A stretch of 64,000 nucleotides of DNA from Ramazzottius varieornatus (taxonomy: Eukaryota > Animalia > Tardigrada): assembly GCA_001949185.1 (NCBI GenBank), contig BDGG01000007.1, positions 2,278,112 through 2,342,111 of the forward strand. Reading direction: 5' to 3'. Positions 5,385-52,754 of the stretch are shown here, one piece after another. Below the pieces are notes generated by a model. It saw only the letters and a list, made by a program, of their open reading frames with translations, made no database searches and had not been told where the DNA came from. A program made the position numbers and the translations under genes. Within the stretch, counting starts at the first letter, position 1. Every line of letters begins with the position of its first letter.

Positions 5385-5394
5385 AAAAGGACTA

Positions 5395-5551
5395 CTGTAT
5401 TCCCCCGATATCTCCGCGAAGCCTGACACTCACGGCGCCCACTACGAAACGTACATGACGTACGGCGGAAGGGCACGTGTATATGGATAACGTACGTCCT
5501 GTAGGTGGCGCCACGAGTGACGCGGTTCGCGAAGATATCGGGGGAATACAG
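5395..5551. mobile_element. 157-bp pogo/Tc1-mariner-type MITE
   Basis: TA + CTGTATTCCCCCGATATCTCCGCGAA ... TTCGCGAAGATATCGGGGGAATACAG + TA; terminal CTGTATTCCC shared with the transposase-bearing element at 40557. Confidence 0.85.
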
Positions 5552-9200: not shown

Positions 9201-9563
9201 GACAAACCTTCCTTTGAATTCCAGCATAACAGTCTTGGACACTGTCATGCAAGCCAAATGTTTCCAGGAAGAAAGTAAGCTACTCTTTCTCTTTATTTTT
9301 CTCATAATTTGCAGTAAGCCTTTTTGTTCACAGAAGACGCGAGGAGAGTAATCGGCGCTGGCGGAGTTTACATTAACCATCAGAAGACACGGGTCGCGGA
9401 CCATGTCATACAAGCTGGCTCGCATATCCTGCCGAACAACATCACCCTCATAAGAATAGGTAACTATCACTAGCTCGATGTTTTCTATGAGTGAAGAGAT
9501 GTTGACTGGTTCTCTGTCCTTGCAGGGAAGAAAAACCACTATGTTGTACGGTGGAGAAGTTGA
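6244..9563 (+). CDS. YARS2: Mitochondrial tyrosyl-tRNA synthetase (multi-exon)
   Basis: Presequence-like MLSRPSAILRSPF; VYAGFDPTASSLHVGN (HIGH); GMSFAEFSYQAFQAYDW; IGGSDQMGN; KFGKSAGNAVWL (KMSKS); C-terminal GKKNHYVVRW. Confidence 0.95.
6598..7464. mobile_element. ~870-bp TIR element inside a YARS2 intron
   Basis: Left GAGATTGATACGGCGCTCGAGCAGAGCAAGAA is the near reverse complement of right TTCTTGCGCTGCTCGAGTGCCGTATCAGCCTCTC; ~75-bp diverged TIR; no clear TSD. Confidence 0.6.
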
Positions 9564-9756
9564 ACGAGTTGATTGAACAAAAGTTGACTCGTTTGATTGT
9601 TATAACGTCGTTTTTTGTCTCTCGGTTTGAAGGTTTTCGCACTGCAGATGCTCCTCAGAGTCGCGTCAGATGGTTTCTAGTTTACACAGTCGACAAATTC
9701 GTACAGAAGAAAGAAAAGAAGAAAGGATGTTTAACGTTGACGAGCAGTAGAGAGAT

Positions 9757-10196
9757 TCATCTTTGCCGTCTGGGTTGAATATATCTGGAAGCGTCAAAGT
9801 CATCCTCAATTTCCTCTTCTACCTTCACTTCCATTTTTGGTTTGCGCTTAACAAGCCGCGCTCGACGTTCTTCTTCCGAGAGAGAATTCAGATCCAAGGG
9901 AAGCTGTTGAAAGCAGACACAATCAAACGATGATCAGTCTAAAGAGTGATACTGAAAGTACTCACCGTAATAATTTTGCGTGGTTCCTTATAGCGAATGT
10001 TGATGGTCGATCCGTCTGGCAGGACCATCATGGTAGGATAAAGGCGTGTGTGTATCTTTCGACCAACTTTCGCCACAGTGGCTCGGTTAGAGTTGTGCCG
10101 GACTGTCTGAGATAGTAACGGGAGCAGAGAGGGAAAGGAGATCTTCGGCTTGCAGAAGTACAGCAAATACACGGCGCTCCTCAAGTTGTTCATCAT
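9757..10196 (-). CDS. MRPL55: Mitochondrial ribosomal protein bL31m/L55, 2 exons
   Basis: NSNRATVAKVGRKIHTRLYPTMMVLPDGSTINIRYKEPRKIITLPLDLNSLSEEERRARL. Confidence 0.93.
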
Positions 10197-10609
10197 GGCA
10201 GCCTACTTCCGCTGGATTCCCAGCCTCCGAAGCAGGACTAACAAGTTAAAGACGGGAGCGGAGCAGAGATAGTCCGCAAAAAGAGGAGCAGATAATTATA
10301 TCCACCGGAAGTCGCTGAAACGGAATATTTTTCAAACGTCAAAATTAATACGTTGGAGTCTGGCTTGATTGAAGCGACTGCTTGATTGGCACGTTCATTT
10401 ACATGGATGCGCACAGGCACAGCACGCACGTGCTATGCGCACCACCAAGCGCGCTGCACAAACCATGCACCTGCACGGCTGCACCGGAAGTGTTCATCTA
10501 AGTTCTTTCTGTTTTCCCGTTCTTCCTGGTCGAACGTTGATTCCTGTGCCACCGCGTGCCATCGGGGAAGGAAGAAGAGCACGGACTTGCCATCTCCCAC
10601 GCATCCAGA
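10197..10609. promoter_or_regulatory. Divergent promoter MRPL55/DPH2 with ETS/GABP-type sites
   Basis: 413 bp between two outward-facing ATGs; ACCGGAAGT at 10304 and 10483. Confidence 0.55.
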
Positions 10610-12949
10610 ATGTCGATAGCTTTGAGTACAGCGGAGCAAGATGCCTTTACGCGAGAGGTGGATTTATCCGACAAGCCCGTTAAAACTCCCCGAGATTTGA
10701 TCCCCGAGGTCTATTCTCTTCGGAGCTGCACCGAGTGGATACTACAGAACAATTTCAAAAGAGTAAGAAGCGACCTAATGTGTTCGTTATTGATAACGCG
10801 ACACAGTAGAGTATCGCCGATCTTACGATGAGCTGACGAGCGTTACAGTAAATTTACCCGTTTGCTCGCAGATCGCTCTCCAATTTCCCGACTGCCTTCT
10901 GCCAGATTCCGTTGGCATCGCACAAGGTCTCGAACAGTCCACAGATCGGAAGATATTCATCCTGGGCGACACGACCTATGGCAGGTATTTGATCCACGAG
11001 TTGGGAAATTGTCGATTGCGGAATGATTTGTTGTGGTTTTGTTTCATCCAATCAATGCAAATCAACCAACATGGGTTTAGTTCGTGTTGATTGGTTTGAT
11101 TGAAACATTCTTTCTAGTTGCTGTGTGGACGAGATCGCCGCGGAACACGGTTCCTGCGAGAGCATCATCCACTTCGGCCACTCCTGCCTTAGTCCAACAA
11201 GCCGTGTACCTGTCGCACTAGTCTTTCCTCGACCTCGAGACTTCGAACTGGTAGACTTCTGGCAAAAGATCGAAGAACTTCGACGGGCAGAAGATGTCGA
11301 GCTGGTTTGCCTTTACGATTCGGATTACTTTCCTGTCACTGGTACACTCCCCCTCCCCTTCCATGCGAAACTTATGCATCACTAATCAAGCTTCGTTTTA
11401 GGTATGGTCGCACAATTTCTGGAATGCAGTTCGATGGTCGTGCCAGAAAACCAGACAGTTCTAACGGACGACGCAACGTGTCTGAATTTCCTCCATAAAT
11501 CTTCCGATGAAGATTGTCAAAGATACTTCGTTTGTCGCAGAGCCTTTTCTCCTACTAAAGATAACTTTAAGAGGGAAAGAGCTTTTGTGTACATCGGCAA
11601 ACAGTCATCGTCCATGGTGAACTTCTTCCTGTCACTTCCTTCCCATAAGTCCTATTCGTACGACCCTTCCACAAAGTTGCTCACGCTTGAAACCCCGCAA
11701 GTTAACAAGCGCATCATGCGAAGGTATGGTTTTGTCGAAAAGAGACAGAGAAATTTTTTTTCCAGGTTTGTGAGCTCGGCATACCAACTGAACAAGATCA
11801 TTTTTGCAAGTGCGCATATTGTCAGCTGATAACGCAAGAAACGTGCGCCACTTGGGAAAACGATCTGGTCGAGTTTGCCGGCCGAGCTCCCACCTATTTC
11901 GTATTCCATTTTCGATCCCTCGCAGGTGTTACCTGATCGAGAAGGCAAAAGACGCGCAAATCGTGGGTATCCTCATCGGGACTTTAGGTGTGAAAGACTA
12001 CCTAGACATCATTGAACGAATGAAGAAAGTTCTACGGACTGCCGGAAAGAAGTTTTACACATTCTCCATGGGAAAGCCCAATCCCGCCAAGCTGGCGAAC
12101 TTTATGGAGGTGGACGTCTTTGTCTACGTGGCCTGTCCCGAAAGCTTCTTTGACTCCAAAGCTTACGTTAGGCCCATTGTGACGCCGCACGAGATGGAAA
12201 TCGCTTGTGGACAACGTGCGATCGACGAAGGGTTCGTCGCGGACTTCCGGCATCTTTTACCGGGTAAGAGGATATTACATTACTTGTGACATCTCATACC
12301 GTGGCATACTCGATATGACATGACGACAGCAAACAATTTTGACAAGTTCGTTTTTCCAAGTGGCGCATGCTGTCAGACAAACAGTCTTATCGAATACTGG
12401 TAGATTTGTCGAGTTCCCGTATCTTCTCTTTTTTCTCCAGGTGCAAATTCCTACGTGGATATCAGGAAAGTTGAGAACGATACTCCCGATATTTCCCTCA
12501 TTAGTGGAAAAGCGCGGTATGTTGGAAAGGAAGAGGAGAAGTGGGTCGAGGATTCGTCAACTCCTTCCGATTCGACAGCGCTGGTTTCCCGAGACCAGGT
12601 TCTGACTGTTGCCCAGTATTCTGCCGGTAAGGAATTTATTTCAAATTTTTAGAATGTTCTCTTAGGATTTCTCTGCAGGTGTAATGTGGCTTTCTTGTTT
12701 GCAGCTGATTACTTTTCCTCCAGGAGCTGGCGAGGTCTCCAACCGCAATACGGCGAGCATTTGCCCGCTGATATCGTCCAAGGTCGGCACGGTATTGCTC
12801 TTTCTTACGAGACAGAGAGAAGCGACTCGGCGAAAGAGAATAGTGAAGTTCCCAATGACCTTACCTGTTGCAAGAACCGTTATGCAAGTGAACATTTGTC
12901 GGCGCATGAGCTTGATTCGTCCTGCGGAGAGACTTGTTGTCACCGATGA
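10610..12949 (+). CDS. DPH2: Diphthamide biosynthesis protein 2 (multi-exon)
   Basis: [90 protein letters not shown]...[10 protein letters not shown]. Confidence 0.93.
11763..11895. repeat. Representative full copy of the intronic palindromic repeat (DPH2 intron)
   Basis: AGGTTTGTGAGCTCGGC...CAAGATCATTTTTGCAAGTGCGCA-spacer-CGTGCGCCACTTGGGAAAACGATCTGGTCGAGTTTGCCGGCCGAGCTCCCACCT. Confidence 0.85.
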
Positions 12950-14253: not shown

Positions 14254-14834
14254 TAAGGTTGTAAGGTTTAATTCCATTCCTTTCCAAATTCCGTTCCATT
14301 CCTGGAATTCCGTTCCGTTCCAAGGGGTTGCCGTTTGGAACGGTGGAATTCCTATTTGGAAAACTAGCAAAAATCGTAAAAAATTTAGGAATTCCACGAG
14401 GTAAACAGTCGAAGATCCAGCAGATCCTGTCGAAAACCTGAACCAGATGCTGGCTCACACATGCGTACCACTGAGGCTAATTGGTCGTTCAGTTGAACGA
14501 CCAATAGCATTTTCGATCCGTCGCACTAAAGTATGCGGCGCATTCAACTGTGCGTAACTCCTTGATTTTCCCTTGGACTTTTAGGTCCGACAAGACCGGA
14601 AGTTCGGATCGGCCAATCTCCAGCTGGCTTTCAGTCTCAAAACCAATATTTGTTGATGACTTCAGATCATTTTACGGTTTTAGATGGGTATGTAAACAGA
14701 ACTAAGCTGGCAAATGAGACTTTGTAATTCCTGGTTCTGGCGATGACTTTCTGGAGAAGGAAATAGGAATATAGGAATATTAGGAATTCTTTTCCTATTT
14801 TCCAAGGGCACTCGGCCTGGAATTTACAAGCTTA
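14254..14834. mobile_element. 581-bp non-autonomous hAT-type element (cargo-free relative of the NUMT-containing element)
   Basis: TIR TAAGGTTGTA ... TACAAGCTTA; perfect 8-bp TSD GGTGGACG (14246-14253, 14835-14842); GGAAT/ATTCC subterminal repeats. Confidence 0.9.
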
Positions 14835-29212: not shown

Positions 29213-29283
29213 TGCGTTGGCCGGGAATCGAACCCGGGTCGCCCGCGTGGCAGGCGAGCATTCTACCACTGAACCACCAACGC
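29213..29283 (-). tRNA. tRNA-Gly(GCC)
   Basis: GCGTTGGTGGTTCAGTGGTAGAATGCTCGCCTGCCACGCGGGCGACCCGGGTTCGATTCCCGGCCAACGCA followed by a TTTTT Pol III terminator. Confidence 0.98.
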
Positions 29284-35473: not shown

Positions 35474-37889
35474 GATTTTTCCCCAGATATGAATAATGAT
35501 AAAGTCCAAGAAACGGATGAGAAAAGGAGACGGGCTTGCTTCAAAAATATGCCAAAGATTTATACTTATTCTAGTGGCTAAAGGAGTCACACCGCTGATT
35601 TATACCAATTCGATCTCTTTCTACATAGCCAACTTGTCCACAACAAAGAAAAATTTGTAACCATGTGGCCGACAAAGTGACGGTTTTGTTTTGAGTAGCT
35701 GGAAAAAATCTCGTTTGATCAGCTCTTTCTGTGTTTTGATAAAAAAGTTACGGCCTGAGCAATGCTTTAGGCGCGGCGACTTCTCGACAGTCTAACATTG
35801 TTTGCACGGAAAAAAGTCAACTGCGTGAGTCACGAAGAAAATTCCGATGGGTACACATGGCAGACGGAAGCAGCCGTTTTCTGAGCTTTCGTTGATTTGT
35901 TTTTGTCCCTCCCTCCCAAGGAAGCATCGTTAAATTTCCTGCATGACCTTATTTAGCGCCCTGCATTTTCCCAATCCCCGATTCCCCATTTTAGACCATA
36001 ACGGAGGCTCCACCGGGCCTCCTCAGCGACGTCTACGGCCCAAACCACTTTTTCTCATATAATGCTTGCGTTGTACAGCCAGCCGTTTGTTTTCCTTTTC
36101 ATGAAGCTAAATTACCGCGTTATATGGAAGCTCGGATAAACAGCTTTGCAAGATTACCTTTCTGAGCGGCGCACGTCTTCGGTGTAATTGACTGACAACG
36201 CGCGCCACTTGGAAGAACGATCTGGTCGAGTTTGTTTGTCGACGTTCAGCTACAAGGGAATAGTAGGCGATTCTACAAACCCAACGTCGTTATTGTGTTC
36301 ACGAGCTTCGCATCAACACTAGAAAGATAACATCGATTCTGACCGAACAGGCTCATAGAACTCGAAGTTTTCACCCTGCATAGTCTTCGTCGGGATCGGC
36401 CCTATCGTATCACTGACCCGCCGATCTGTAAACCACCAAAATAGTGGAACCTCAACCAGACTTTTGCAACCGTGACCTTCCAGACCAAAGTTCTGGCCCA
36501 CATCCCAGCAAGTGGAGAACGTTGAGATTGCGTTCGACGTCGAGGAACTCGTTAAACTCCGCGACGAAGTTGGACAGGATAACGTTCGTTGTGTGGTCGT
36601 GAAGCTTAATGAGCTCGAGGACTGGTCGGTCCAGTTTGGACTTCCACTTGAAGGACTGCATGATGCAGGGGAAATCATCAATATCACCCCAATAAGCAGT
36701 CACTGGACGGCATAGATGCTTTCTCTGCAGATCGATGAAGACCGTTGTGGGGCGAGGCGTATCTGACTTGCCGAGAAGCTGACTTTGCTCTTCAGGCTGC
36801 GGTGCTTGGGGGGTCTGGCGGCCGAAGCTCGTCCAAAAATGAAGTGGGACTTCTCAGCGATAGCGCTGTCAAACGCGATCCTTGGTCCAGCAGCAAGGTG
36901 TTGAATCCCGAAGCCACCCTGTAGCAAAACAACCACAGTGCTTTGGAATTCTTTCCTACATGATTATCTTTGAGAAAAGGGACCCAGATCGCTGTCACAA
37001 TTAGCTTACACCGAAGTTGCGCGCCACTTCGGAAAAGATCTGGCTAATCTCGTTTGCCCACGTCCCATTTCTGTGTTTCTTCTGTCAAGAGCTACATACC
37101 GGCGATACTTGAAACGTTGGAGAGTGTAGAAATGTTTGAAGAACTCGTGAACCAGGTCAAAATGCAGATCGTTCCGGCCGATGACGGTCTGGCCATCGTT
37201 TCGCGCCTCGCTTCCGGTAGCGGATGCTGCTTGGTTCTCTGTCGCATTGGCTTCGGTCCGTTCATGACTGCCCATTGGCTGATTTGGCTCGGTTCCTGCA
37301 ACAGAAGAACCCGCCATCAATCGGCTCCCAGAGATTTAGGCGAAACGTGTTTGCAAAAGTGTCGCATTGAGGAATAAGGATCGAAAACAGCTTGGTCGAG
37401 GCCCCGAGAGTGAAAACAGTGGGGAAACGCGCAAAAACTGACCAGATGTTCCGACTTGCGAGTAGTGTAGATGACCGGATGTAGCTTGACGTAGCTCAGC
37501 TCGACTCGACTAGCCGCGAATAAGGTTGTGCATTCCAGTTCCACTCCTTTCCATATTCCGTTCTTTTCCAGGAATTCCTCTCCGTTCCAAGGGGTGAGAA
37601 TCTGGAACGGTGGAATTCCTGTTTTGGAAACAGACAAAATCTGGAAAAATAGAGTAATTCCATGAGGAATTCCTCTATTTTTAGGTTTTGCGGATGATTG
37701 ACGGATCACTTAATCGAAGGTCCCTCGAACCCATAAAAATGGTAGGTTTTATGGGATCCACGGTCGGATTTTTCGACGTGGCTGTGAATTCTGACGGTTA
37801 GCAAAAAACACTTTGGGCTGAAAAGGCATGGTACAAGCATTACTAGGCTAAAAATTGCAGATCTTGATGTTTTCCGATTTTCTTTGCTG

Positions 37890-39419
37890 AATTGTGTTAT
37901 TGAAGATTGTAAAGTTAAAGGAATGAGTATAAAGATAGAGAGAGGTGCACCTACACCCCCCCAATTTCTCAGGGATGGCTCGTAAAATAGCGCATGCAAA
38001 TAAAAAATATCATTCGGGTTGAATATGAGAGGGTTTGCTGGAATAAAATTTTCCGCGTCTATGAGAGAAAAGGGAAAAATATAATTGGTTATTATAAACA
38101 TAAAAATAATTGAAAGTAAAGAAGTTAAATCTTTTAAAGAAAAATAAGAGTGAAAAGTGAATTTATCTCTCCCCATGCGTAACCCTAAGGGATTACTTGA
38201 TTTTTGTTCATGAAGAAAAGTTAAATGTGTAATCACCAATAGTCTGATAACGAAAGGTAAAAGATAATGAAGTGAAAAAAATCGAGTAAGAGTCGCGCCA
38301 TTTACGGAGAAACCACCCCACACCCGCTCAACTAATGGCAGCCCTACATATGGAATTGCAGACAATAGGTTTGTACTGTAGTGCTCGCAGTTTATCGCGC
38401 ACTCAACCACGTGATTAGTCAGGTTTGCCCGGCAAGATCAGCTGTTGCCAGAAGGGCGTGAGTTGATTGACTTTAATGGGTCGTCAGTTATTTTGAAAAA
38501 CGATCCGGTCCAAATTCCAGTTTCTTTCACTGGATCCGAAGGTAGAAAACATTGTCATGGCTAGGACCCGTATATTTATAGCGATGAGGATGCGGAGAAA
38601 GCTTTGAGAAACTATGAAGAGAGCGGATTATCGAGGAGAAAGCATGCGAAGCTTACAGGAATTCCGGAATCAGCCATGCGCAGCTGGTGGTGAATCGAAT
38701 GATACCTGTTCCATAAGCAGCTGATGAGCTTCACGGAACCTCATGTTTTTGCTTCACAAAGCAAAGATTCCGGGCAAGCGAGGACCGGAGAAAAGTGAGC
38801 AGATACCGGAAACGCTCCAGATGGAAATGAGCAATTTGAGTTTGACTTTTTAGAATAACACTTGTCTCAACCGATGGCCAATCATTGATTGTTGATAAAG
38901 CAGTACAACGTCTAAAATCCCCGATCGGGCGTTATTTACTGTTCACGTGGTTGAGTGCGCGATAAACTGCGAGCACTACAGTAATTACCGTTGCCCCCCA
39001 ATAAGACATTTGCCCCTAAGGTAGTACATAACCTAGAAATGCAGTTATTATAGAGATTAAAAAGATAATCACGCCCCTCACTCAAGTCATATTTAATACG
39101 TATGATTCAAAATACAACCCACGCCCGATGTGAATAAAAAAAGCTAAAAAAAATAATGAGCTCCGTTGGCATGGGTAATTGGTACTAGTCAACCGCCGTT
39201 CACATCCCGTATTAGATGTCTGATACAGTCAAAAGCTAAATTAATTCTCGATGCGTAGTGTATTGCTAAAAAAATTTCTGTAATAATCTGAGTTATTAAA
39301 CACACCTCTAGAAGAGACCCAAAATTTCAAAAATGAGTAATATTAGAAGGGGCCGGGAGATCTACTAAAGCAGAATTTATGATTTTAATTAGTGGGTGAT
39401 TTTTTCGAATATTTATCAT
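37890..39419 (-). pseudogene. cob: NUMT cytochrome b (3'-truncated, interrupted at 38376-38981)
   Basis: HPLIKI...[10 protein letters not shown]; WGATVITNLLSAIPY; WGGFSVNGATLTRFFSLH; frameshifts and an internal stop. Confidence 0.95.
38376..38981 (+). mobile_element. 606-bp deleted pogo-like element in NUMT cob
   Basis: Perfect 39-bp TIR CTGTAGTGCTCGCAGTTTATCGCGCACTCAACCACGTGA; TA TSD; removal restores ...ATT ACA AAC CTA... (ITNL); residual HTH LSRRKHAKLTGIPESAMRSW. Confidence 0.93.
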
Positions 39420-39630
39420 AATAGGATCTTTTCATGGGGGTTCGGTACTTAGATGTGATATATATTGTAGCGGTCAAAGAGATAAATAAATAGCATAATA
39501 TAAACGTAAATACATTGTGGAAAAAATAGGTGGACGAAATCTCTAACAGGTCTTTGGTTATGATTAAAAAATTTAAGTTCAATAGTTTTCATTGATCTCA
39601 AAGATGGTAGGAGTGCTAACAAAGTAAATA
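39420..39630 (-). pseudogene. nad6: NUMT nad6 3' part
   Basis: AT-rich hydrophobic frame directly upstream of and codirectional with cob. Confidence 0.6.
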
Positions 39631-39649
39631 TATTTTTACTTTTTTTTTT

Positions 39650-40400
39650 ACAAAAAGATCGAAAACTTATAAGTTCCGATATTTATTCATCAGTTGAGGG
39701 GGAATTTCCCTTCTCTACTTTAGGGCAACGTTCTCCAGGTTGACTACCGATTTTACTGACTGATAAACCGCCTCAATACATTGGCGCTCCGCGCAGTTGC
39801 ACCAGGTCAACGTGCATCTGCAGCACAGCTGCTTAGCCACTGGGCATGAAAGTAACGCAGCACAGCGCAGCGTACTTTTGGACCTGCGGCCCAGTGCTCT
39901 ACTTTACCTCTGCTTTTTTTGGTCGGTTTACAATTATTCGTCTTTGGACTGGTTGATATTGTACTTTTTAAAAAATTACAGAGAAAATTTTGTTTTATTG
40001 TTTCTAGTAATAACTTTTGCTATGTTTATTGAGTTGCCCTTTTATGGGCTCCACTTGTGACTGCCGAAGGATCATGTTGAAGCTCCCGTTTCAGGGTCAA
40101 TAGTTTTGGCTGCTATCTTATGCTATTAAAATTAAGATTATACGGATTTTATCGCACTTTACTCTTAATAAAACCTCTATCCTTCTTTTTGTTTGCTTTG
40201 GTTTTCATCTTATGGGGAGCTCGTTTAAGTAGACTAGTGTGTTTACGGCAAACAGATATAAAATCTTTAATTGCTTATTCTTCGGTGTGACATATGGGTA
40301 TTATACTTGCTGGGGTTTTCTTTTTAGAGACAAATGGGGTTTAAGTTTGTTATATCATTCTTAACTGCTCTATTTATAATTATGTTATTAAATTTTGTTT
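39650..40400 (+). pseudogene. nad4: NUMT nad4 fragment with internal deletions
   Basis: LHLWLPK.HVEAPVSGSMVLAA, LRQTDMKSLIAYSSV.HMG (invertebrate mitochondrial code). Confidence 0.92.
39716..39901 (+). mobile_element. 5'-truncated copy of the TAGAGCA hAT MITE in nad4
   Basis: Near-identical to the reverse complement of part of 44874-45309; ends CCAGTGCTCTA; left end and some nad4 sequence are missing. Confidence 0.85.
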
Positions 40401-40407
40401 TATAACA

Positions 40408-40468
40408 ATTGATTTAGTTTAAGTATAGAAATACTGTATCGTGGTTACAAAATGGCTTTCCAATTAAT
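40408..40468 (+). pseudogene. trnH: NUMT tRNA-His(GTG)
   Basis: Anticodon arm TGTATCGTGGTTACA between nad4 and nad5. Confidence 0.65.
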
Positions 40469-40556
40469 ATTTTTTATGGTTTAGAGGGGTATTTTGTTCT
40501 TGATTACATCTTTTTTCTTACTTAATAGGGGTATCACAGTTATGGAATTACAACTA

Positions 40557-41925
40557 CTGTATTCCCGCGAAAGTTTTGCGCAGTCACGTGAAATGCCCGT
40601 AAATTACGCCGGCAGGGACAGAAAAGGTCTGTGTCTTCAATCAAAGACACTCGTCAATCAATTGCCATACACTTTATTCTTCCGAGAAAGAGTCTTCCAC
40701 CGAACTGAAACTAGACTCGAAAGACCTTTCCAAATCATCAGGGCTATCCAGAATCTCACCACCCCGAATTCCACTGAATTCCACCACCCCGAATGAGTAC
40801 TGAAGATGCGGACGTTTTCGGGAATCTCCAACTTGTTGAGGATTCTCGGCGACAACTTTCCGGTTTTCTTGTTACCTTTGAACACAACGGAAGCTGGAAA
40901 TTTCCAACCGTTGGCGCTGATCGTGAGGCACACCGTGAGACACTCAGAATCTCCTGGAGGTTGCACTACTCGCACTTCCTTGGCACCTTTCGGGGACAAA
41001 GTCTTTTTATAGGTGTTCTGCAGCCTGACTGATGTTTGGTCCATGTTCATTATGAGGTAAGGATGATGAGGGTTGTTGATGAAGACAGCTTCGAATATCC
41101 TGTGTAGGAAAAATTCTTCCTGGATCTGCAGAAAAGAAAGAGGTAAATGGCAGTCAACTTTGCGCATGACGTCACAAATCGTAATGTCATAGCAAGTAAC
41201 AAGGCTTAAGGGAAAATTTTCACAATATGACGTCACACATTGTACGTAAGCAGATCCCTTACCTTATCTTCTTCCGTTTGGGCGAACTTTCGGCCAATCT
41301 TCGTTGTGACTCGTAGCACTAGTCCGCGTCGCTGCCTGAAGTCTCCGACCCGGCCTTTTGAAGCTTTGAATCACGTGACTCTTCGCTCAGCGGCGACAGC
41401 AATAGCCATCCTTTGCAAATCGAAGTCTCGAGTTGGTTTGGAGGCCTTCTGGTGGTCTTCATATCGCTTGTACACTTCGTCTTCGAGCTCGGGGTGCTGA
41501 ATTCTCCTGCCAGAGTCGTTGATCTCATCCGGAAGCTTTCCAGACCTGTCCATGACAAAAGTTGCTGTAGATACATACTGTACAAGGTTTTCAAACAAGT
41601 TGGAGCATTTCTTACTTCCAAGCACGCAATGTCGATTCCGGAATGCCGACGGCTTTGGCATAACTGCGAAAGCTTCCCTCCCACCTCTCCAAGGCACTAA
41701 CGTGACGCTTCGCCTCCTCAACGGAGTGTGTATTATAAGATTTAGAAGTCATTCCGACGAGATACCTGACACATGGGATTCCGGACAGAAAATCAGAAAC
41801 AAAATGCAACAAGTGAAAACGGGATGGGCCCCAATCAGGCAATCAATGCATTGTACATTAAAATGTTCGTAGGTTTGATTTATGGGTATGACACGTGACT
41901 GCGCAAAAACTTCGCGGGAATACAG
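40557..41925 (-). mobile_element. 1369-bp pogo/Tigger-like element with a decayed, intron-containing transposase
   Basis: TIR CTGTATTCCCGCGAA...GCGCAGTCACGTG; TA TSD; HTH GIPESTLRAWK; CENP-B-type HPELEDEV...FKASKG; DDE_1 start IMNMDQT...LTVCLTISANG.K.PA.VVFKG; premature TGA at 41371; C-terminus lost. Confidence 0.92.
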
Positions 41926-43338
41926 TATTCAACTCGTTTTTTACCTCTTTATCTATTTCTTTTGTAATTGATTTTTATTCTATTTTATTTGCTTCAATTG
42001 TTAGTCTTATTTCTTCTATGATCTTTTTTCTCCCAGTTTCATATAGAGGGGGATTATCAGCAGAGGGGTTTTACATTACTTTTGAGGGGTTTTGTATTTT
42101 CGATGCTTTTTTAAATTTTTAGCTTTAATTTGTTTTTTTCACTTGGGCTTAGTTTCCTATTTATCAGTGGTGTTTCACGGAAGAATTTATAGCTCAGTTG
42201 CGGGGATATTAACCTTTTTAATAAATCGTGTGGGGGATATTTTTTTCTCTTTTCCATTAGGTTGTTTTCTCTGTTTTCCTGATTTTCGTATTTTGATACA
42301 AAAATTCCAGGGTTTACTCAGTTAGGCGCTTTTTTTTATTTATTACCTTTATTACAAAAAGAACTGAAATTCCTTTTTTTTCTTGGCTTCCAGCTGCTAT
42401 GGCCGCCCCCCACACCTGTGTCGTCATTAGTCCACTCCACTTTCGTGACAGCGGGTACGTTTCTTTTAATTCGTTTTAGTCCTTTAATATCGAGAGCTTG
42501 TTACCCCCTTATGGTTTTTAGCCTTCTCTATATTGATAGCTGGAACAATAGCTAATTTAGAATGGGATATAGAGAAAATTATTGCATACTCTACCTTAAG
42601 ACAACCTTCTTTCATGATATTTTCCTATTCGACAGGTTTAATTATTTTTTGTTTTTATCACTGCTAACTCATGCTCCATTTAAAGCCTCCCTTTTTATAA
42701 GAGCGGGCGTGGTAATTCATGGGGAAGACAGAAGACAAGATTTTCTTCTGGTAAAAAATTATTTGCACCTTCGTTTATAGAGTGCATTCTTTCCTTGTGT
42801 GGTTTGCCTTTTTTGTTTGGTTTTCTTCCTAAAGACTTGATTTTGGTTGCTCTGTTGAAAAGAATAATATGTATTATTTTGTTTTCAATTGGGGTTTTAT
42901 TAACCATTTTATACTCCCTACGATTTTCTAACTATATATTGATTTCCTTTCTTCGTTCCGTTCAGCCCTATCAGGGGTTTACGAAACTGTCAAGTATCTG
43001 GTTTTCCCACTTGAAGATCAATTATTTCTTCTATTGCTGTAGGCTCTTTTTGAAGGGATTTTTTTAAGTTTTTGTTTTTTTTACTTATTTGTTATCAATT
43101 TGAAAATTTTTTCATCTGCCATTAGTAATATTTTTATTGTTAGTGTTTTATATAGTTGTTTTGAAAGAGGATCTTCTTTCTTAAATTATATGGTGGTTTT
43201 TAAATCACAATATAAGTGCCCGAGGTTGATAAATATTTAATATGATAGCCGATAAAGTCTTTTGTTTTGTCGATCAAGGATGATTAGAGCTTTATGGGCC
43301 TCAAAAAACTTTTTTCTCTTTAACCGTTATCTCTAGGG

Positions 43339-43770
43339 TAGAGCACGGAATCTGGCCGCATGCGCTGTACTGCACTGCAGCTGTGCTGTGCTGCAGCACA
43401 GCTGCAGTACGGAAATCGACGAAACTTGTGCAGCACAGAATACAGCAGGAAGCCGAAGACTGCCGCGCAGATCTACGGACCAACACTCAACAAAAATTGG
43501 TATATTTGGGTACTCGAGCTTCAGGCATCTGAGTTTTGCCGTACCGTATGGCTACGTTTTCCCCGATGGACTAACCATTTTGCCGACAATACTATAACAA
43601 AAGTCAGTACATCAGCGTGCTGCGCAGTTGAAAAAGGTCCATGTGCATCTGCAGCGCAGCTGCCTAGCCACTGCGCATGAAAGTTGTGCAGCACAGCGCA
43701 GCGTACAGCGACCTGGTAGCGTGCGCAGCACAGTCGCTGCGTAATTTTGAACCTGCGGCCCAGTGCTCTA
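43339..43770 (+). mobile_element. 432-bp hAT MITE in nad5
   Basis: TIR TAGAGCAC ... GTGCTCTA; perfect 8-bp TSD CTCTAGGG; GCAGC/GCTGC subterminal repeats. Confidence 0.93.
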
Positions 43771-43849
43771 CTCTAGGGTAAGAATGTCTTTTGTGAGATG
43801 AAGATTAGTGTACTTTTTTTCACTCTTTATTTTATTATTAATTTATTCA

Positions 43850-44212
43850 TTTGTTTGAGTAGCTTATATAAAAGCTTAGATTCGAAGATTTTAATAAAAG
43901 TAATTTTCTTTCACAAAATAAAGCCTTTGGCATTTTTGTAATGGAATCATAATACGTTATTTTACGTCATCTATTCAAAGAATTTTCGTGAGATGCACAA
44001 CTATTACAGTTAGCGGCTTTAGATCTTAAATTCTTTGAATTGAAGTTTTCTTATGGTTTTAGTTAACACCTAAACACTGTTTTAGTCACAATTTATAATT
44101 AATAAGGATTAATGAATCAAAAAGTAGGTCGAAACTACCAATGTCTTATTTCTGGGTGCGGCCAATGACAATTTTTAATTGCAATTTAACTTTTATATTT
44201 TTAAATACACTC
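43850..44212. pseudogene. NUMT tRNA cluster F(+), E, S1, N, R, A (-)
   Basis: Anticodon arms GAA (~43893), GCT (~44012), GTT (~44065), TCG (~44130), TGC (~44181); the Glu call rests mainly on position; ancestral panarthropod order. Confidence 0.75.
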
Positions 44213-44515
44213 CCGTGACCAATCTAAAGCGCCTTGCTGTCATTCAAAAATTTCAATATCAAAAACTAAAAAGATTACTGTAATGATAAAGAACCGTAAT
44301 GAAAATGCTTTGCGATTGGTGTGGTATGAGTCAAACCCACACTCAAAACTGCTTATCTTTTCTCGTCATTTAATTCGATTTGGGTTTTTAATATATGGAA
44401 CAGTAACATAATAAAACTAATAACTGCAATTAGACTACATATTGGTATTAAAATTACTCTATTTAGGAAAAAATTTTTGATTGGAAACAAATACACTAAA
44501 TATATTAAAAGTGTA
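44205..44515 (-). pseudogene. nad3: NUMT nad3 and tRNA-Gly(TCC)
   Basis: [12 protein letters not shown]...[19 protein letters not shown]; TTTGTTTCCAATCAAA anticodon arm at ~44477-44492. Confidence 0.88.
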
Positions 44516-45660
44516 GTAACCTCGTCAATATAGAAAATTACACAAAAATAATCACACTACGTCGACAAGATGTCAATATCACATAGCAGCTTCTAAATCT
44601 AAATGATGGTTTAGGGAGTATGTCGTATAAATGATACGAATAAGAAAATTCTTCCTACTAATACGTGTAAACCATGAAAACCAGTTGCCAAAAAGAAAGT
44701 TCTCTCAGATCTTGAGTCTCCGATTGAATAAGTGAATTCCCAGTATTCTCCAGCTTGTAGGGTGGTGAAATGTAATCCAATAATAATTGTAACTAATACT
44801 TTCACTTTTATGTCTTTATTATTTTGTTCAATCAAGCCATGGTGGGCTCAAGTCACAAAAATACCTCTTGTAATAGAGCACTGGGTAGCAGGTCCAAATG
44901 TACGCTGTAACTGTGCTGCGCACATTACCAGGGCGCAGTACGCTGTGCTGTGCTGCACACCTTTCATGTTCAGTGGCTAAGCAGCTGTGCTGCAGATGCA
45001 CGTTGACCTGGTGCAGCTGCGCGGAGCGCCAATGTATTGAGGCGGTTTGTAATTCAGTCAGCGAAATCGGTAGTCAACCTGGAGAACGTTGCCCTAGAGT
45101 ACGGCAAAGCTGAGACGGCTGACGTTCGAATGCCCAAAAACTGTAATTTTTGTTAGGTTTCGGTAGGTGCATCTGCGCGGTAGTCTATGGCATTCTGCTG
45201 TATGCTGTGCTGTGTCGCACAAATTTCGTCAGTTCACGCGCTGCAGTTGTGCTGCAGCACAGCACAGCTGCAGTGAAGTGCAGCGCATGCGGCCAGATTC
45301 CTTGCTCTATCTTGTAAGTAGAACCGATAAGTTTAAAAGTGGAACTTGAAAGGGGTTAATTGCTGTAACACCTAAAGGAGGTCACGTTAGTCCGAGTTCC
45401 ATATTGGGGGCTAATCTTCTATGAAAAAAACTTCAAAAAAAAGAAAAAAATCAATTCCAGAGGTAATATATAATACTATACCTCATCGTAGACCATACAT
45501 AACCAAGTTTCTGTGATAACCTTGGTAAGAGCTTTCTCGTGATATCTCGTCACCATTGGAAGGTATTAAGAATAGTTAATATAAGACCCGTGTTTATTAT
45601 TGTGGGTGATTTAGTGTATATTCAATTAATAGTTTCAACTAGAAGAAACAAAAATTCAAT
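44510..45660 (-). pseudogene. cox3: NUMT cox3 (5'-truncated, interrupted at 44874-45309)
   Basis: FQWWRDI.RESSYQG, WPPLGVTAINPFQVPLLN, TWAHH, FFLATGFHGLHV, EAAMWYWHLVDVVW. Confidence 0.95.
44874..45309 (-). mobile_element. 436-bp hAT MITE in cox3 (same family as 43339, opposite orientation)
   Basis: TIR TAGAGCA ... TGCTCTA; perfect 8-bp TSD TCTTGTAA. Confidence 0.93.
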
Positions 45661-46375
45661 AAAAAAGAAAAATTGAAAAAAGAAAAGAAGTATATAGAAG
45701 CCTTATTCATAAAATCTTAGCATACTCAGCTATAAAAATTAAAGCAAATATTAAACCCCCGTATTTAACGTTAAAACCAGAAACTAGCTCAGATTTACTT
45801 TCAGCCAAATCAAAAGGAGCCCGATTCGTCTCCACAACACATGAAATAAAAAACTACTACTAAGGGGGAAAGGAAAAAGATTCTAAAGTAAGTGTGAAAA
45901 TTATAAATCTCAAAAAAACTGTATGAAACAAAAAAACACCAAAGACAAAAAGATAAAAGCGAGGGTAATTTCATAAGATACAGTTTGAGCAACAGTACGA
46001 AGACCCTCTATCATAGCATATTCAGAATTGGAAGACCACCCTGAGAAAATTACCTCATACACTCTTACACTAATACAACACAAACAGAAGAGAGAATTTA
46101 AAATCGAGATAGCCTGAAAAGCTAAACAAAGAAACTCATACATAATAATTACAAAACCCAAAACTGGAGAAAACCAATAGAACAAAAAATTTGAAATTTT
46201 TTTTCTCTGGAAAACAGTTTTAAAGCATCTGCAAAACGTTGAAATGAACCTGCTATACCAAGCTTATTAGGACCTTTATGAAGTTGACTATATCTCAGTA
46301 CCTTGCGTTCTAATAGCGTTAAAAAAGCAACAGCAACCATAACAAAAACTAAAATTTGAAGATAATAAACAAAAA
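45660..46375 (-). pseudogene. nad1: NUMT nad1 (3'-truncated)
   Basis: [71 protein letters not shown]. Confidence 0.95.
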
Positions 46376-46389
46376 CATCAAATAAATAA

Positions 46390-46580
46390 AGTATTTTCAG
46401 AAAAAATAAAATTTATATCTGAACTTTAAATTCAAAGCACTAATCTGCCAGACTAAACTTTAAGACAATGTAAATTTATATGATACCCTATCAAAATAGT
46501 CCTTTTTCAGGCATCATAAAGTGTATAAAATATATTTTTAAATCCTAAATTTAATACACTAATCTCCCAACAAAAATGAA
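46390..46580 (-). pseudogene. NUMT tRNA-Leu(TAA), tRNA-Ile(GAT), tRNA-Leu(TAG)
   Basis: Minus strand: TTGAA-TTTAAAG-TTCAG; GATGCCTGAAAAAGGACTATTTTGATAGGGTA; TTAAA-TTTAGGA-TTTAA. Confidence 0.8.
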
Positions 46581-46659
46581 AAAAAAACAAATGCATAATA
46601 ACAATAGTTAATTTTAATTACATTTGTTAACAATGTGTTAAAAGTTAAAACACTTTAAT

Positions 46660-47305
46660 CCTTGTTCCCATCCAGAATGGCATGGAGTTCAACGGGAGAG
46701 TCTGGAAGAAATAGCTTGCCTGTCGAAGGATGAGCTGGATCGTCGACTGGGCAAGTCCGGAGTGAAGCCATCAGCCAAAGTCCAGACTGTCGCCTTCCTC
46801 CAGTGCGTCCATAGGGTTAAAGGTATGAAAGTGTTGCATTTAGTTTCAGTCCGAGACCGATAAAATATTGGTAAACACAAGGTAAACACTTCCCACAAGA
46901 ACAGGATCCAGGTCCAGAGAAATTGGAAATATCGGACTAAATGGATTGTGATTATGGCGATGAAAGTTTCAGAAGGATCGTGATGAAGTTATGAACTCAG
47001 CCACAAAGCCAACCTTCAGCCAGTAAGTCTACGGTTCCAGAGTATGCTGATGTGTTCAGACGATGGCTCGTTGAAGCTTAAAGATGACATCTTGTGTTTG
47101 GATCGTCTGAGACTGGAATGCACGGCTTAATGCGTTTCCCATTTCTGTTTAGGTAACTTGCTGGACGAGAACTCGTTTCGCATTTCAGTTGGGTTTGCGT
47201 CTTGGGGCTAGGCTCTATGAGCCCCATGCTTGTCGTTGCAAAAAACTTGTCGACGAGCTGGGGCGCCACGACTTGTCTTGTCAGTGGAGTGCCGGACGTC
47301 ATAGA
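46660..47305 (+). mobile_element. Fragment of a CRE-like non-LTR retrotransposon (C-terminal zinc-knuckle region)
   Basis: Across frameshifts reads LNAFPI..LGNLLDENSFRISVGLRLGARLYEPHACRCKKLVDELGRHDLSCQWSAGRH, as found upstream of the restriction-like endonuclease in CRE elements. Confidence 0.7.
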
Positions 47306-47311
47306 CTTAGA

Positions 47312-47575
47312 ACAATAAACAAACTCATCAAATAAATAAAGTATTTTTGGAAAAAATAATATTTATATCTGAACTTAAAACTCAAAGCACTAATCTGCCA
47401 GACTAAACTTTAAGAAAATGTAAATTTATATACTACCCTATCAGAAACGTCCTTTTTCAGGCATCTTAAAGTGTATAAAACACATTTTTAAATTTTAAAT
47501 TTAACATGCTGCCCTCAGCAAAAATTGTAAGAAAACAACAAATACATAATAATAATAATTAATTCTAATTACATC
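47312..47575 (-). repeat. Diverged second copy of the mitochondrial trnL2-trnI-trnL1 block
   Basis: Aligns colinearly with 46363-46625, with scattered substitutions. Confidence 0.9.
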
Positions 47576-48606
47576 CTTAAACAGGGTACTCGCACGAACT
47601 TGAATCTCTATATTATATTAATTGATGAAATGATGAATAAAACATTATATAAGAATAATATGTAAAATAAGACTAAGAAACAGAAAAGAGAAAAGAATCT
47701 AAAATAAATGGTTCAAGATTAATAAAGCAAGCAAGCGCGACCCCAGAAGGTCGATTGCTCTGACACCCCTTTTTTCTTTTATATATTGGCGAAAACTAAA
47801 CTATAATGTAAAGGATATATTTTACTAAGGCTTCTTCAAAACTGGCGCTTCGGGGTTCTTTCTATATAGAGACACGATACGTTCCACGGAAACAGATGTT
47901 TTCACAGTGTTTTAGAATTCCAAGTTTCCATTAAAGAATTTTGGAAAAGGAAAATAGGATATAGGAATATTGGGAATTCCTTCCTATTTTTCATTCCAAG
48001 AGGGTTTGGCCTCGAATGCACAACCTTAGCCGCAAACGGCTTGAGCCGGCTTCATCATGATGACTCAGCAGGTTTTGAGACCCAGATCTTCTCCATTTCT
48101 TTTTACGAACAAAATTCCAGCGAACACTAAAATTCTTCTGGTTTATGGATGATCCGACTTTCGAACTTGTGCTATAGAAACTACCCGAAGATCATATTTC
48201 GGCTATTCATTACATATTACATCGCGTAAGATCATGTCATGTTGATTAATATCGTAATTCATTGTAATCTGATGGTTAAAAACCTATCGGAGCTATTTGC
48301 TGAGTCCGGCTAGCCGTTTGACATAACGGCTAGCCCTTATGTCAAACGGCTGGTGAGTCGTACGTCATGTCGACTACATCTACTCTACTTGCGATTTCGG
48401 AGACCCGACTTCCGGTAGCGAATGCAGTCGATTTGGAACCATTCGATGCCTTGATTGAACAAAATAAGACCGGTTTCGCAAGTCACGTTTCGGCTCTGAC
48501 GTTCGTCACGTTTCAACTTTGCAGATTATTCAACCCATTTGCAGATTATTCTACTATCATTTTTTTATTTTCTTTTTGAGACTCCTCTGTACTTTATCCC
48601 TGCACC

Positions 48607-51570
48607 ATGCCTCCTATTAAGTTTACAGGTGAGATCGGGAAGAAGCTGACTTTCCTGTACGAGAACGTGAATGGCATACGAAGCAAGAGCGAGGAAACAA
48701 AGCGATGGATGGAGGAAAGGAATGCGGTTATCGTCGCTTTGGTAGAAACTTGGGCAGATGAGTCTACGGCTGATTGTCTGATTGCTGACTTGGATCAGTA
48801 CAACCTATTCAGGAAAGACCGACAAAGATGTCTGAAGGAGAAGGGAGGTAGAGTTGCCATTGCCGTCAAGAACGGCCTACAAGCGCTGAGGATGACAAGC
48901 CTCGAAGTGGATGGGTTGGAAGTTTTATGGATAAAGCTGGTTTGTCTCCGCCTGAATGTCCTGGTAGGAGTAGTATATGCGCCAAGCTACGATACTGATG
49001 TCTTCTCGAAGCTTCGTACGTTAATGGAGTCATTTCCACCATTCCTTAAGCGCAACCTGATATTAATGGGAGACTTTAACTGCCCAAACATCATGTGGGA
49101 TGGAGATGTAAGCGGGAAGTAGGAAAGAGATCGGGACTTAATCGGTCTGAAGAATGAGTTCAAGCTTTACCAGCGAGTGAAGGGAACCACTCGCTTCCGG
49201 GGTTCATCTTCGCTTGATCAGCTATTCGTCACGCAGTTGGGATTTGTCCGGAACACCAGAGCCGCCCCTCCACCTGCCGTTACCTGCGATCATCATGCCA
49301 TCGAAAGCAAGCTCATGCTCATGACACCCAAGTTCAAGACTTTACCGAAGATGGTGTGGAAGATCGACGGCAAAAAGATACAAGAATTCAAATCAATCTT
49401 GTCTTCGATTGATTGGGGGCAGATCTTTGATTTGCAATGTAACGTTGATGGGGGTGTTTTAGTTTTTCAGGAGAAGCTTGTATCTGCGATGGAGAACAAT
49501 GGATCAGGTAGACCACTCACGTTGGAAGGAGCTTGAAGCCAGTAAGAGAAAGATTCTTTCGTCAGACAAAGATCGCCGTCTTCGTCAGATTGCCACATCG
49601 TCACGCCGTAATCCTAAAGCCGTCTGGAAGTATCTGAAGAAGAACAACTCGTCCGATTCCATCCGACCGATTCCCATTCCTGATGAAGAAGAAAAGTACA
49701 TCGTTGATACCCAAGACAAAGCTGAGTTCATCAGTCTAGATTTCTCCGAAGTTCATACTGCCTGTACACAGCACTGCCTGCCAAGTGAGACCGTTCATGG
49801 TGCGCCGATTAACGTTGAACCTCCAGAGACACTCCACTGCCCGCCACTGCAGCTCACCACTTCGTCCATCCTGGAGCTGCGACGGCTCGACATGTCGAAA
49901 GCTTCTGGCTCATTCCTCATCAACAACCGTCTGCTCAAGATCGCAGAAACGACCATCCTGTACCCTCTGTCGAGACTCTTCAACCTTATCATCAGCAAGA
50001 GACAGTATCCAACAGCATGGAAGCAGACAGAAGTCATTCCCGTTCCGAAGAAAGGCAGTTCCACTTTCCGGCCCATTTCCCTTCTGCAGCCGCTCTCAAA
50101 GCTATTCGAAAAACTCGTTGCCGTCCACCTGCATACCTTAGGTAATTCTAACCATCTTCTTTCAGATTCGGTTTCCGCAAGCAAAGATCGACCGAAATGC
50201 AGTTGCTTCTTATGGCCCACCAATATTCCCACGTGTTCATACAAAAAGAAGAAGTCGAAGCTGTTCTTCTGGATTGTTCCAAAGCCTTTGACAAGCTTCC
50301 ACATTCGACCATCGTACGCAGCCTGGCAAGCCATGGTGTGACCGGAGAACTGAACGACTTGCTGTCCGATTACCTCCGAGAAAGAAGCCAAAGAGTTTTA
50401 GTGGAAGGGTACTTTTCTTCGGAGCAGCCAGTGCCATCGGGTGTCCCTCAAGGATCCATCCTTGGACCTTTGCTGTTTGTCGTCGCCGTGAACAACCTCG
50501 CAAGTAAGCTCAAGTCACCTGTGATGCAATATGCTGACGATATAATCTTATGGCGAACTATCAAAAGCGATGAAGACTGCACAGCTCTTCAACAAGATCT
50601 GCAACGTCTGGAAAACTGGTGTGAAGAAACTGGCCTCAAGCTTAATCCGGAAAAGTCTCAAGATCTCCGAGTGTCCAACAAGAGAAAGAAGGTGGCAGTT
50701 ACTAGCGGCAGCTACACTATCGACGGCAAGCAGATCCGCACGGTAAACGGGGCGGAGTGTCTGGGTGTCATGTTCTCGCGCAAGATGGATTGGACAGGAC
50801 AAGTGGACAAGGTGACGAAGAAGTGTCGACAGAGCTTGTACGCGATCAACGGCCTTTTCCCCAAGCGACAGGGTTCATTGAAGCAGCTTCTTTACAACAG
50901 CATGGTAAGATCGGTGGTGGACTACGCTTCGTCGTGTTGTTTTTCAACAACGAAGGGTCTCCAGAGGCAGCTGGAATCAATCCAGAAAAAATTCCTGCTT
51001 AGTATCCGTCTGAGCTCAGCAGACGAGAACAGCCATGACACGGACTTCCAGCACCTTCGGGAAGTCGGATGGAGACCTCTCTGGCAGCGAAGATGTGAGC
51101 TCATCATGGTCAATGCCTTCAGGATTTGGAACGGTAACTTCGCCCACGGTGACAGGCTGATGAAAGTTGAGGGGAACGGCCAGAACATGCGGACAAGAAT
51201 CCAGTTAAAGATTTGCACGATGTCTCTTGTGTCGGTGGCGCCCCCTTCCTGCAAGATGCTCGACTCGACCGTTAGCTCTTTTGCTTACATCGTAGAAGCT
51301 TTTCTGAAAGATCCCCTTTTTACTCCATTCTCTGTGGATTTGAGTAGTCTATGTAGCTTCAAAAGATATCTTGATGGTCTGAATTTTTCGAATTTTAATT
51401 GGTGCAAAAAGAATGTCGATGGGCAATTGTTAACTTGAATCAACTTGTTTTTTATATGTTTGCCTTTGCATCCCTTTTTCTCCGGTGCTCTTGCCATTAT
51501 CTTTCAAATTTGATTCGCAAGCGCGAAGCCTGGCTTTGCATTGGACAAATGAAGGTTATTATTATTATTA
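48607..51570 (+). mobile_element. Decayed CR1/Jockey-group LINE (APE endonuclease + reverse transcriptase)
   Basis: NVNGI, VETW, LMGDFN, CDH; FRPISLL, LDCSKAFD, SGVPQGSILGP, QYADD; in-frame stop at 49120-49122 and frameshifts; (TTA)n 3' tail near 51556-51570. Confidence 0.92.
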
Positions 51571-52754
51571 AAATCTCATGATTTTATACTGTGTCAGTTT
51601 CTGTGCAGAAACCGTTCGGCGGTTTGCTCACTTCCGGCACAGGATATAAGCATAAAGGGATATTAGGCCGCGCGAGTTCAGCAGGGTATCGGAATTTCGC
51701 GGGGCCTGTCATTTAGCCCTCTACTGGATAAACCCCTGACGTCTTTCGCTTTTTCTGGCGATAGTTTCGGGAAGACAATCATCTCTTCATAACTTCAATG
51801 CTAGTTTCGGTCGAAAACATGATGGATTTCGAGAAGGAACGAGAGCGGAAGTCAAGTGGCGCAATGTAGGAGAGGTAGAGTAGGGAACCGCTCAACTTTT
51901 CCTTTGCGGAAACCAGAATTTCACAAAATTTTCTTGCCCACGCTGGACTGTGCGGAATAATCTTTGGTAATGTCAAGGCGAAAGCGGGCGGTAAACCTTT
52001 AATGCGGACGCGGAAGCGGAAGTGAGCGGTACTTCAGGCAAGGTAAACGAGTCTGAATTCAGAAGCAACTACTATGGAAGAAACATAGTTATCAATACAT
52101 TGCCGAAATTGCGTTTATAACATTCAACTCATGGATGTTACAGTACAAACCAACCCAACTGTACATACGACAACAGTTTCCTGTGGTTGCCTATCATAGG
52201 GATTGTTCGCAATGTGACGCAACAAGGTTTACTTTTAAACATTTATCGTAATTATCATCGACGCGAGGCGGGCGGAAAACAGTCACATCAAATACTAATC
52301 GAGTCCAAGCGGTAACAATTTCAGCAGATTCCAGGGCGGAAGCGGGCGGTAACCACCGCTCGCTTCCGCGTGGACCCGCCGTGCGATCCAATTCCCTACC
52401 CTAGGGAGAGGCGTGTAGCTCGGATCACTTGACGCGCCAGGTCCAATTTGCTAATTGGTCTGATCACGCTCCACTCCACCAAAATTTCAAATTTCGACAA
52501 AAGTGGTCAATAGTACAATCAACTCGGCTTGCACTGAATTTCAAATTCTGTGCAGCGATATTAGGCAAAACATAAGCCGTGGATAACTGCACAGCATAAA
52601 ACATATACTTATGCTGTGCAAGCCGAAAACATGACCTGCGAAACAGGTCCATAGTCTTTTGAGAATATAATAATCAATTTTAACTTGGAAAATCTCATTG
52701 TCATTCGGTTCTTGAACTCTTCCTACTCTTCGACACCTAGTGCTCGTTTGCAGG

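Follow-up and report, generated by a model that had tools for sequence, protein, structure and literature searches.

We analyzed a 64,000-nucleotide stretch of the genome of the tardigrade Ramazzottius varieornatus (C7:2278112-2342111 in a 55.8-Mb, 200-contig assembly; "the window" below), which sits at a contig end and carries a nuclear mitochondrial DNA segment (NUMT) enclosed by the two parts of a short, apparently hAT-like miniature inverted-repeat transposable element (MITE). The terminal inverted repeats (TIRs) of the MITE, TAAGGTTGTGCATTC at 37521-37535 and its reverse complement at 48015-48029, form a perfect 15-bp pair. They are bordered by 8-bp target site duplications (TSDs) with one mismatch, GCCGCGAA on the left (37513-37520, plus strand) and GCCGCAAA on the right (48030-48037, plus strand). 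The original prediction, made from the letters of the window, had recognized this arrangement and located its start correctly, placing its end 1 bp short, at 48036. The resident MITE comprises 348 bp on the left (37521-37868, plus strand), where the 16-bp TIR TAAGGTTGTGCATTCC (37521-37536) is followed by subterminal GGAATTCC/TTCCGTTCC repeats, and 155 bp on the right (47875-48029, plus strand), with the TIR at 48014-48029. Between them lies an insertion of 10,006 bp (37869-47874), composed of three blocks of mitochondrial DNA (mtDNA), fillers, a nuclear patchwork, and later nested transposons; GC content falls from ∼48% to 34-44% between 38 and 48 kb.

The mitochondrial reference was contig C200 (14,428 bp, 28.6% GC), which has the full metazoan gene set. 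Read with the invertebrate mitochondrial code, its gene order is cox1, cox2, atp6, cox3, and nad3; nad5, nad4, and nad4L on the minus strand; nad6 and cob; nad1 on the minus strand; a region of ∼10.7-13.2 kb free of open reading frames (ORFs), where rrnL and rrnS are placed by position only; and nad2. By blastn, 6.0 kb of the insert aligns to C200 at 75-87% identity. The prediction that the cargo is of mitochondrial origin thus holds, but not that all ∼10 kb of it is: ∼4 kb is nuclear, made up of nested nuclear transposons and a 690-bp nuclear patchwork. Block A (37870-45634, minus strand; 75-87% identity) is an inverted copy of mitochondrial (mt) positions 9544 to 3245 and includes cob, parts of nad6 and nad4, nad5, a tRNA cluster, nad3, and cox3; it is broken up by nested elements and has lost ∼1.1 kb (mt 7295-8374). 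An 8-bp filler (aactagaa, 45635-45642) joins it to block B1 (45643-46625, plus strand), which matches mt 9872 to 10886 at 83% identity and contains nad1 on the minus strand, a tRNA region, and the 3' end of rrnL. Block B2 (47316-47873, plus strand; mt 10622 to 11185) is part of rrnL. The segment mt 10622-10886 therefore occurs twice, in B1 and B2, and the copies differ at 30 of 258 sites (11.6%).

Pfam recognizes Cytochrome_B at 37706-38410 and NADHdh at 45910-46185. ARAGORN and Rfam found no tRNA in the insert, which is expected for degraded, reduced metazoan mitochondrial tRNAs and hence uninformative. The coding blocks have decayed, with 52 frameshifting indel runs and 5 in-frame stops (code 5); homology to the animal's own mtDNA, nuclear embedding, and decay, the three marks of a NUMT, are all present. 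GC content is 28.6% in C200 versus 34-44% in the NUMT blocks: either the mtDNA became more AT-rich after the transfer or the NUMT drifted toward nuclear composition. The genome contains two other large NUMTs, at C11:1689594-1696979 (mt 70-9608, with an internal deletion) and C6:1086504-1090479 (mt 12579-9318). Each of them shows ∼82% identity to mtDNA and is as distant from the NUMT in the window as from mtDNA, suggesting that they are independent insertions. An endpoint common to the window and the C11 NUMT was considered and rejected, as the latter continues to mt 9608.

A genome search with window positions 37400-48150 revealed a copy of the locus that has no insert. C7:2205738-2206206 matches the first 467 bases of the query and the adjoining C7:2205461-2205736 the last 276, both on the minus strand, and the two halves of the element, separated by 10 kb in the window, meet directly there. 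This paralog, 72 kb upstream on the same contig in a ∼3-kb inverted duplicate, holds a 503-bp element (C7:2205583-2206085) whose TIRs and flanks are those of the window copy. The 10,006-bp insertion is missing from it and from every other copy of the family. The left MITE part is ∼94% identical to the empty paralog element, and its collinearity with other family copies, at least 10 of them, extends to ...CTTGAT. The paralog also has the same imperfect TSD, including the identical left octamer, indicating that the mismatch predates the duplication. A cargo-free element with the same TSD, which the original prediction had proposed to look for in other strains, thus exists, but as a paralog rather than an ortholog.

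The duplicated sequence (C7:2207491-2204560) corresponds to window segments 36041-37866, 47875-48499, 51569-51875, and 52404-52651. The left flank (36041-37512) has its inverted counterpart at C7:2207491-2206094. Within it, window positions 36054-37502 and C7:2206100-2207480 show no substitutions over 1.37 kb and a single 75-bp indel (36599-36673); from position 37503 onward, ∼20 bp before the MITE, the paralogs differ by 5-6%, or one difference per ∼20 bp. The substitution-free tract stops within 20-40 bp of the left end of the element and, judging from this pattern, looks like a recent gene-conversion tract ending there. The right flank (48038-48499) is ∼95% identical to the paralog, and the match resumes in the last two segments. 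Two stretches have no counterpart in the paralog: a ∼3-kb insertion at 48500-51568, which contains an ORF with a reverse transcriptase domain (RVT_1, 50197-51438) and is probably a truncated retrotransposon lacking long terminal repeats (non-LTR), and 51876-52403.

The insertion point can be read to the base. Ten other family copies, when aligned, run through ...CTTGATCGATAT... unbroken across the point at which the window copy is split, and the filled copy retains CTTGAT (37863-37868) and CGATAC (47875-47880). Because these ten copies are continuous, the unbroken element is ancestral, and 37869-47874 is an insertion. The break lies between CTTGAT and CGATA; the element lost no more than 2 bp, and the insertion did not create a target duplication. 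At the left joint, which reads ...CTTG-AT-GTTTTCC..., the AT is a microhomology assignable to either partner, and mitochondrial homology begins at mt 9544; at the right joint, one extra A (47874) precedes the point at which the element resumes. The genome search returned no other match spanning either element/mtDNA junction, and among 42 genome matches to the MITE terminus there is no other plus/minus pair more than ∼600 bp apart in the 55.8 Mb. The composite is single-copy, and its cargo was gained at its present site.

We conclude that the locus is, very probably, an ordinary end-joining NUMT in a resident hAT-like MITE, inserted after the locus had been duplicated, and that the composite has never been mobilized. 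Of the two routes offered in the original prediction, this is the one in which mtDNA entered a resident element during break repair, and it is borne out by the paralog, with the same element, flanks, and TSD and no mtDNA, and by the unbroken ancestral form of the family. The repair pathway would have been nonhomologous end joining (NHEJ) or microhomology-mediated joining.

Logan contigs from two 2016 runs of one sample were compared with 3,081 letters of the locus. Contigs with 0 differences cover 45320-46449, 46420-46697, 46727-46921, 47078-47259, and 47451-47934. They cross the A/B1 joint, where a 1,233-bp read-built contig runs through the 8-bp filler without a difference; three patchwork joints; and the right mtDNA/MITE junction, which is spanned by a 484-bp contig (47451-47934). 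At 47942-48073, the reads give two variants, distinguished by the four paralog-specific sites, and the depth of each is 22; the equal depths indicate two loci and not two alleles.

The 690-bp patchwork (46626-47315) has no mtDNA match and lies between the overlapping blocks B1 and B2. Five of its pieces, 37-129 bp in length, each match one other, unlinked and single-copy nuclear locus: 46653-46707 matches C2:5795478-5795532 (98% identity), 46702-46830 matches C6:168860-168988 (94%), 46877-46994 matches C8:504304-504421 (96%), 46993-47029 matches C1:1110810-1110846 (100%), and 47023-47119 matches C17:656047-656142 (93%). The patchwork further includes a low-copy piece of 43 bp (46830-46872) and, at 47120-47302, a dispersed repeat of 183 bp. 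At three joints, neighboring pieces overlap by 6 (CTGGAA), 2 (GA), and 7 (GTAAGTC) bases. The donor loci diverge immediately outside each piece, and read contigs of the donor loci leave the alignment exactly at the piece ends. Several pieces hold splice donor-like motifs, indicating that they are copies of genomic DNA and not of spliced RNA. Total divergence between the patchwork and its donors is 4.6%.

This complex filler is the only unusual feature of the NUMT. It is plausible, though short of probable, that a single repair event in the germline produced the entire insert, with three mitochondrial fragments and at least five nuclear copies bridging a clean break; the joining of several of these copies at 2-7 bp microhomologies would then point to template switching or to the capture of shattered DNA. 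Also tenable, at a similarly tentative level, is a two-step history in which the mtDNA came first and the 690-bp patchwork, together with the repeat of mt 10622-10886, stems from a later break within the NUMT. In favor of the latter, the pieces are 93-100% identical to their donors, and this 4.6% divergence is less than the 11.6% between B1 and B2; the 183-bp repeat (47120-47302) could itself have arrived as an ordinary insertion at a later time. However, a later insertion requires a 265-bp target duplication, and the divergence of B1 and B2 dates the duplication of mt 10622-10886 to about the age of the NUMT itself. In addition, the donors look genic, with splice donor-like motifs and ORFs, and so may evolve slowly.

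The NUMT is old, and its decay also bears on when it entered. The window NUMT differs from the mitochondrial contig at 13.5, 8.7, and 36.6% of first, second, and third codon positions, respectively. A three-way comparison of the window NUMT, the mitochondrial contig, and the C11 NUMT was used to split these differences between branches. The branch specific to the mitochondrial contig (5.7, 1.7, and 20.2%) bears the pattern of selection, which places these changes in functional mtDNA. The window-specific branch (7.6, 6.5, and 12.0%) is far more even over the codon positions, and its decay as a nuclear pseudogene, taken from second codon positions, amounts to ∼6%; the 30 differences at 258 sites between B1 and B2 give the same ∼6% per lineage.

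Several observations weigh against, or limit the support for, a single end-joining insertion after the duplication. Since the duplication, the element itself has acquired only 15 changes specific to the filled copy and 10 specific to the empty copy in 500 positions, and the NUMT looks about twice as decayed as an insertion after the duplication allows. For a single event to account for the 4.6% divergence of the patchwork, the donor loci must be under constraint. The left junction is represented by 86% of sampled 31-mers in the best run, the contig comparison applying to stretches elsewhere. Moreover, a single sample, probably that used for the assembly, supplied all the informative reads, and the two runs of a second sample cover only dispersed repeat pieces of the compared stretch and so give no independent check of the junctions.

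The age mismatch could also mean that the NUMT is older than the duplication and that the paralog lost it by precise deletion, since the duplicated element has diverged by 2-3% per lineage, less than the NUMT has decayed (∼6% per lineage, with 11.6% between B1 and B2). However, the deletion would have had to take out 10,006 bp to the base and leave the family consensus CTTGAT/CGATAT, with boundary repeats of at most 2 bp, and we consider it very unlikely. Gene conversion next to the element explains the mismatch more simply: the paralogs have exchanged sequence, as the substitution-free tract at 36054-37502 indicates, so the duplication is older than their divergence suggests. This exchange is the likely reason that an insertion made after the duplication appears too old.

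The MITE belongs to a family with at least 12 further full-length copies at unrelated sites, 469-519 bp long and 75-84% identical; this divergence indicates that the family is old. The 16-bp TIR TAAGGTTGTGCATTCC is conserved among copies. The 42 genome matches to the 16-mer terminus, at ≤1 mismatch, compare with 0 for a reversed control, so the family match is far beyond chance. Most full-length copies have a recognizable 8-bp TSD, for example, CATCCGAG, GTTCGGTG, and GTTCTTCC; at 14 other copies, we found 4 perfect 8-bp TSDs, 5 with one mismatch, and 1 with two mismatches. A sister subfamily of ∼580 bp has at least 12 copies in the genome, among them the 581-bp element at 14254-14834 (plus strand) of the window, with a perfect TSD, GGTGGACG. 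The original prediction was right about this TSD and about the homology between the ends of the two elements, which in our alignment covers ∼155 bp on the left and ∼115 bp on the right. Only the termini are in common, and the shell is longer than the original prediction had it, reaching inward to 37868 and 47875.

The shell may be called hAT-like as far as a nonautonomous element allows, an assignment resting on the TSD and TIR. As in MITEs of the hAT superfamily, most copies have an 8-bp TSD, the 16-bp TIR begins with TAAGG (YARNG-like), and short subterminal repeats of the GGAATTCC type follow; the structure is palindromic and folds strongly, with z = -8.4 for the empty element as single-stranded DNA. 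A fragile site, with the break at the tip of a hairpin, was considered, but the break site falls in an unremarkable inner stem region, and we draw nothing from it. The family differs from these in that no transposase-bearing partner was found in the scans described next. The hAT dimerization domain (PF05699) has at least 143 matches in the genome, many in open frames, and elements of the hAT type figure prominently in this small genome. In a TIR scan of 12 sampled loci with this domain, no transposase ORF was linked to the ends of the MITE, and Pfam searches of ORFs beside unpaired termini gave only actin and DDE_1 fragments and no hAT transposase.

These data bear on the second route of the original prediction, a Pack-hAT element that picked up mtDNA at another site and brought it here by transposition, or that could spread NUMTs in this way. 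Intact 15- to 16-bp TIRs, an 8-bp TSD, and subterminal repeats on both sides are what such an element would show, and the domain matches indicate that hAT transposases exist or existed in this genome. Against it, the cargo-free paralog has an identical TSD and identical flanks, which places the acquisition of the cargo at this site. Neither junction recurs elsewhere with a different TSD, as it would had the composite moved; the family is old; and the autonomous hAT element sought with these ends was not found at the 12 sampled loci or beside the unpaired termini. Our literature search turned up no described NUMT carried by a DNA transposon, and the present case is not an example either. Because the composite is unique and its cargo was acquired in situ, Pack-hAT mobilization is effectively ruled out, and we regard it as highly improbable. 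An assembly chimera that joined true mtDNA reads to a nuclear repeat, for which only the general risk and the position of the window at a contig end can be cited, is almost inconceivable, as identity between the insert and the mitochondrial contig is only 75-87%, nuclear transposons flanked by TSDs of their own lie within the insert, and its joints are crossed by exact read-derived contigs.

Taken together, the preferred reading, end joining of loose DNA into a resident MITE, would imply the following course of events. A 503-bp nonautonomous hAT-like element would have entered at GCCGCGAA long ago, and one TSD copy would later have mutated. The ∼3-kb locus would then have been duplicated in inverted orientation, 72 kb away, after which a double-strand break would have opened the window copy of the element between CTTGAT and CGATA. 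End joining would have sealed this break with loose DNA in the form of three mtDNA pieces; short copies of unlinked nuclear loci, joined at microhomologies, were probably added in the same event. Thereafter, the insert would have decayed as a pseudogene and gathered five transposon insertions. The transposon ends would be bystanders in this scheme, and the composite would have been immobile since.

The five later insertions are all in block A. A 606-bp MITE (38376-38981) with ∼41-bp TIRs (CTGTAGTGCTCGC...) and a TA duplication is Tc1/mariner-like and has at least 14 copies elsewhere in the genome at 98-99% identity. A truncated copy of a 436-bp MITE family (39716-39902) occupies the site of the missing mt 7295-8374. 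The 1,369-bp element at 40557-41925 (CTGTATTCCCGCG..., ∼50-bp TIRs, TA flanked) has three other copies (94-97% identity); its ORFs have no Pfam match, and its Tc1/pogo-like class is taken from the TA flanks and TIR only. A 432-bp hAT-like MITE (43339-43770; TIR TAGAGCAC...) has a perfect 8-bp TSD, CTCTAGGG, and many genome copies at 92-95% identity, and a MITE at 44874-45309, of the same 436-bp family in opposite orientation, has the perfect 8-bp TSD TCTTGTAA. This hAT-like family is thus present three times in one NUMT, the third copy being truncated. Being dated, the NUMT also acts as a trap in which the activity of at least three transposon families can be put in order. Outside the insert, a nuclear tRNA-Gly(GCC) gene (29213-29283, minus strand) is the sole tRNA or Rfam match in the window.

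The patching of breaks was reportedly the subject of yeast experiments by Ricchetti et al. (1999) and Yu and Gabriel (1999). NUMTs integrate by end joining in chromosomal breaks, with few deletions (Hazkani-Covo & Covo 2008, PMC2567098). The insertion studied here is like such NUMTs in that a break was filled with little or no chromosomal loss and no target duplication, the joints show 0-2 bp of microhomology or 1-8 nucleotides of filler, and decay as a pseudogene followed. It is unlike them in its size, 10 kb including later insertions compared with a mitochondrial genome of 14.4 kb, and in combining three mitochondrial blocks of mixed orientation with at least five unlinked nuclear copies in the same insert.

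Multifragment templated insertions at breaks are known from Dna2-deficient yeast and as human templated-sequence insertions. As in these and in plant mosaics, several unlinked fragments are concatenated here at short microhomologies; unlike them, the present case comes from an animal germline and can be read at base level thanks to the surviving empty paralog. Mosaic organelle/nuclear insertions in plants are said to have been described by Noutsos et al. (2005). A review likewise notes that plant organellar integrants can be mosaics of organellar and nuclear DNA (PMC7037861). Mammalian NUMTs are often found beside repeats and seldom within them (10 of 557), those few repeats being retrotransposons (Tsuji et al. 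2012, PMC3467031). As in mammals, the NUMT here is younger than its host repeat, but this host is a DNA-transposon MITE.

Pack-MULEs and other Pack-type elements resemble the locus in having transposon termini and a TSD around foreign, host-derived DNA. However, Pack-type elements carry their cargo in transposition and occur with different TSDs, whereas here the cargo came after the element and there is only one composite. Organellar DNA enclosed by transposon ends need not have been moved by a transposon, and the evidence shows that at this locus it was not. What is worth keeping is a base-resolved mosaic repair scar. A survey of R. varieornatus counted 53 NUMT fragments totaling 33 kb without dissecting them (PMC7329468). 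At this locus, a rare natural before/after pair, the empty paralog and the filled site, makes a large NUMT insertion readable to the base: a clean break, 0-2 bp of microhomology, multiple mitochondrial blocks, and a chain of unlinked nuclear copies. Scars of this kind directly record break repair in the germline of a radiation- and desiccation-tolerant tardigrade that is studied for DNA protection. If similar patchworks recur at the other NUMTs of the genome, they would form a record of how a desiccation-tolerant animal mends its breaks.

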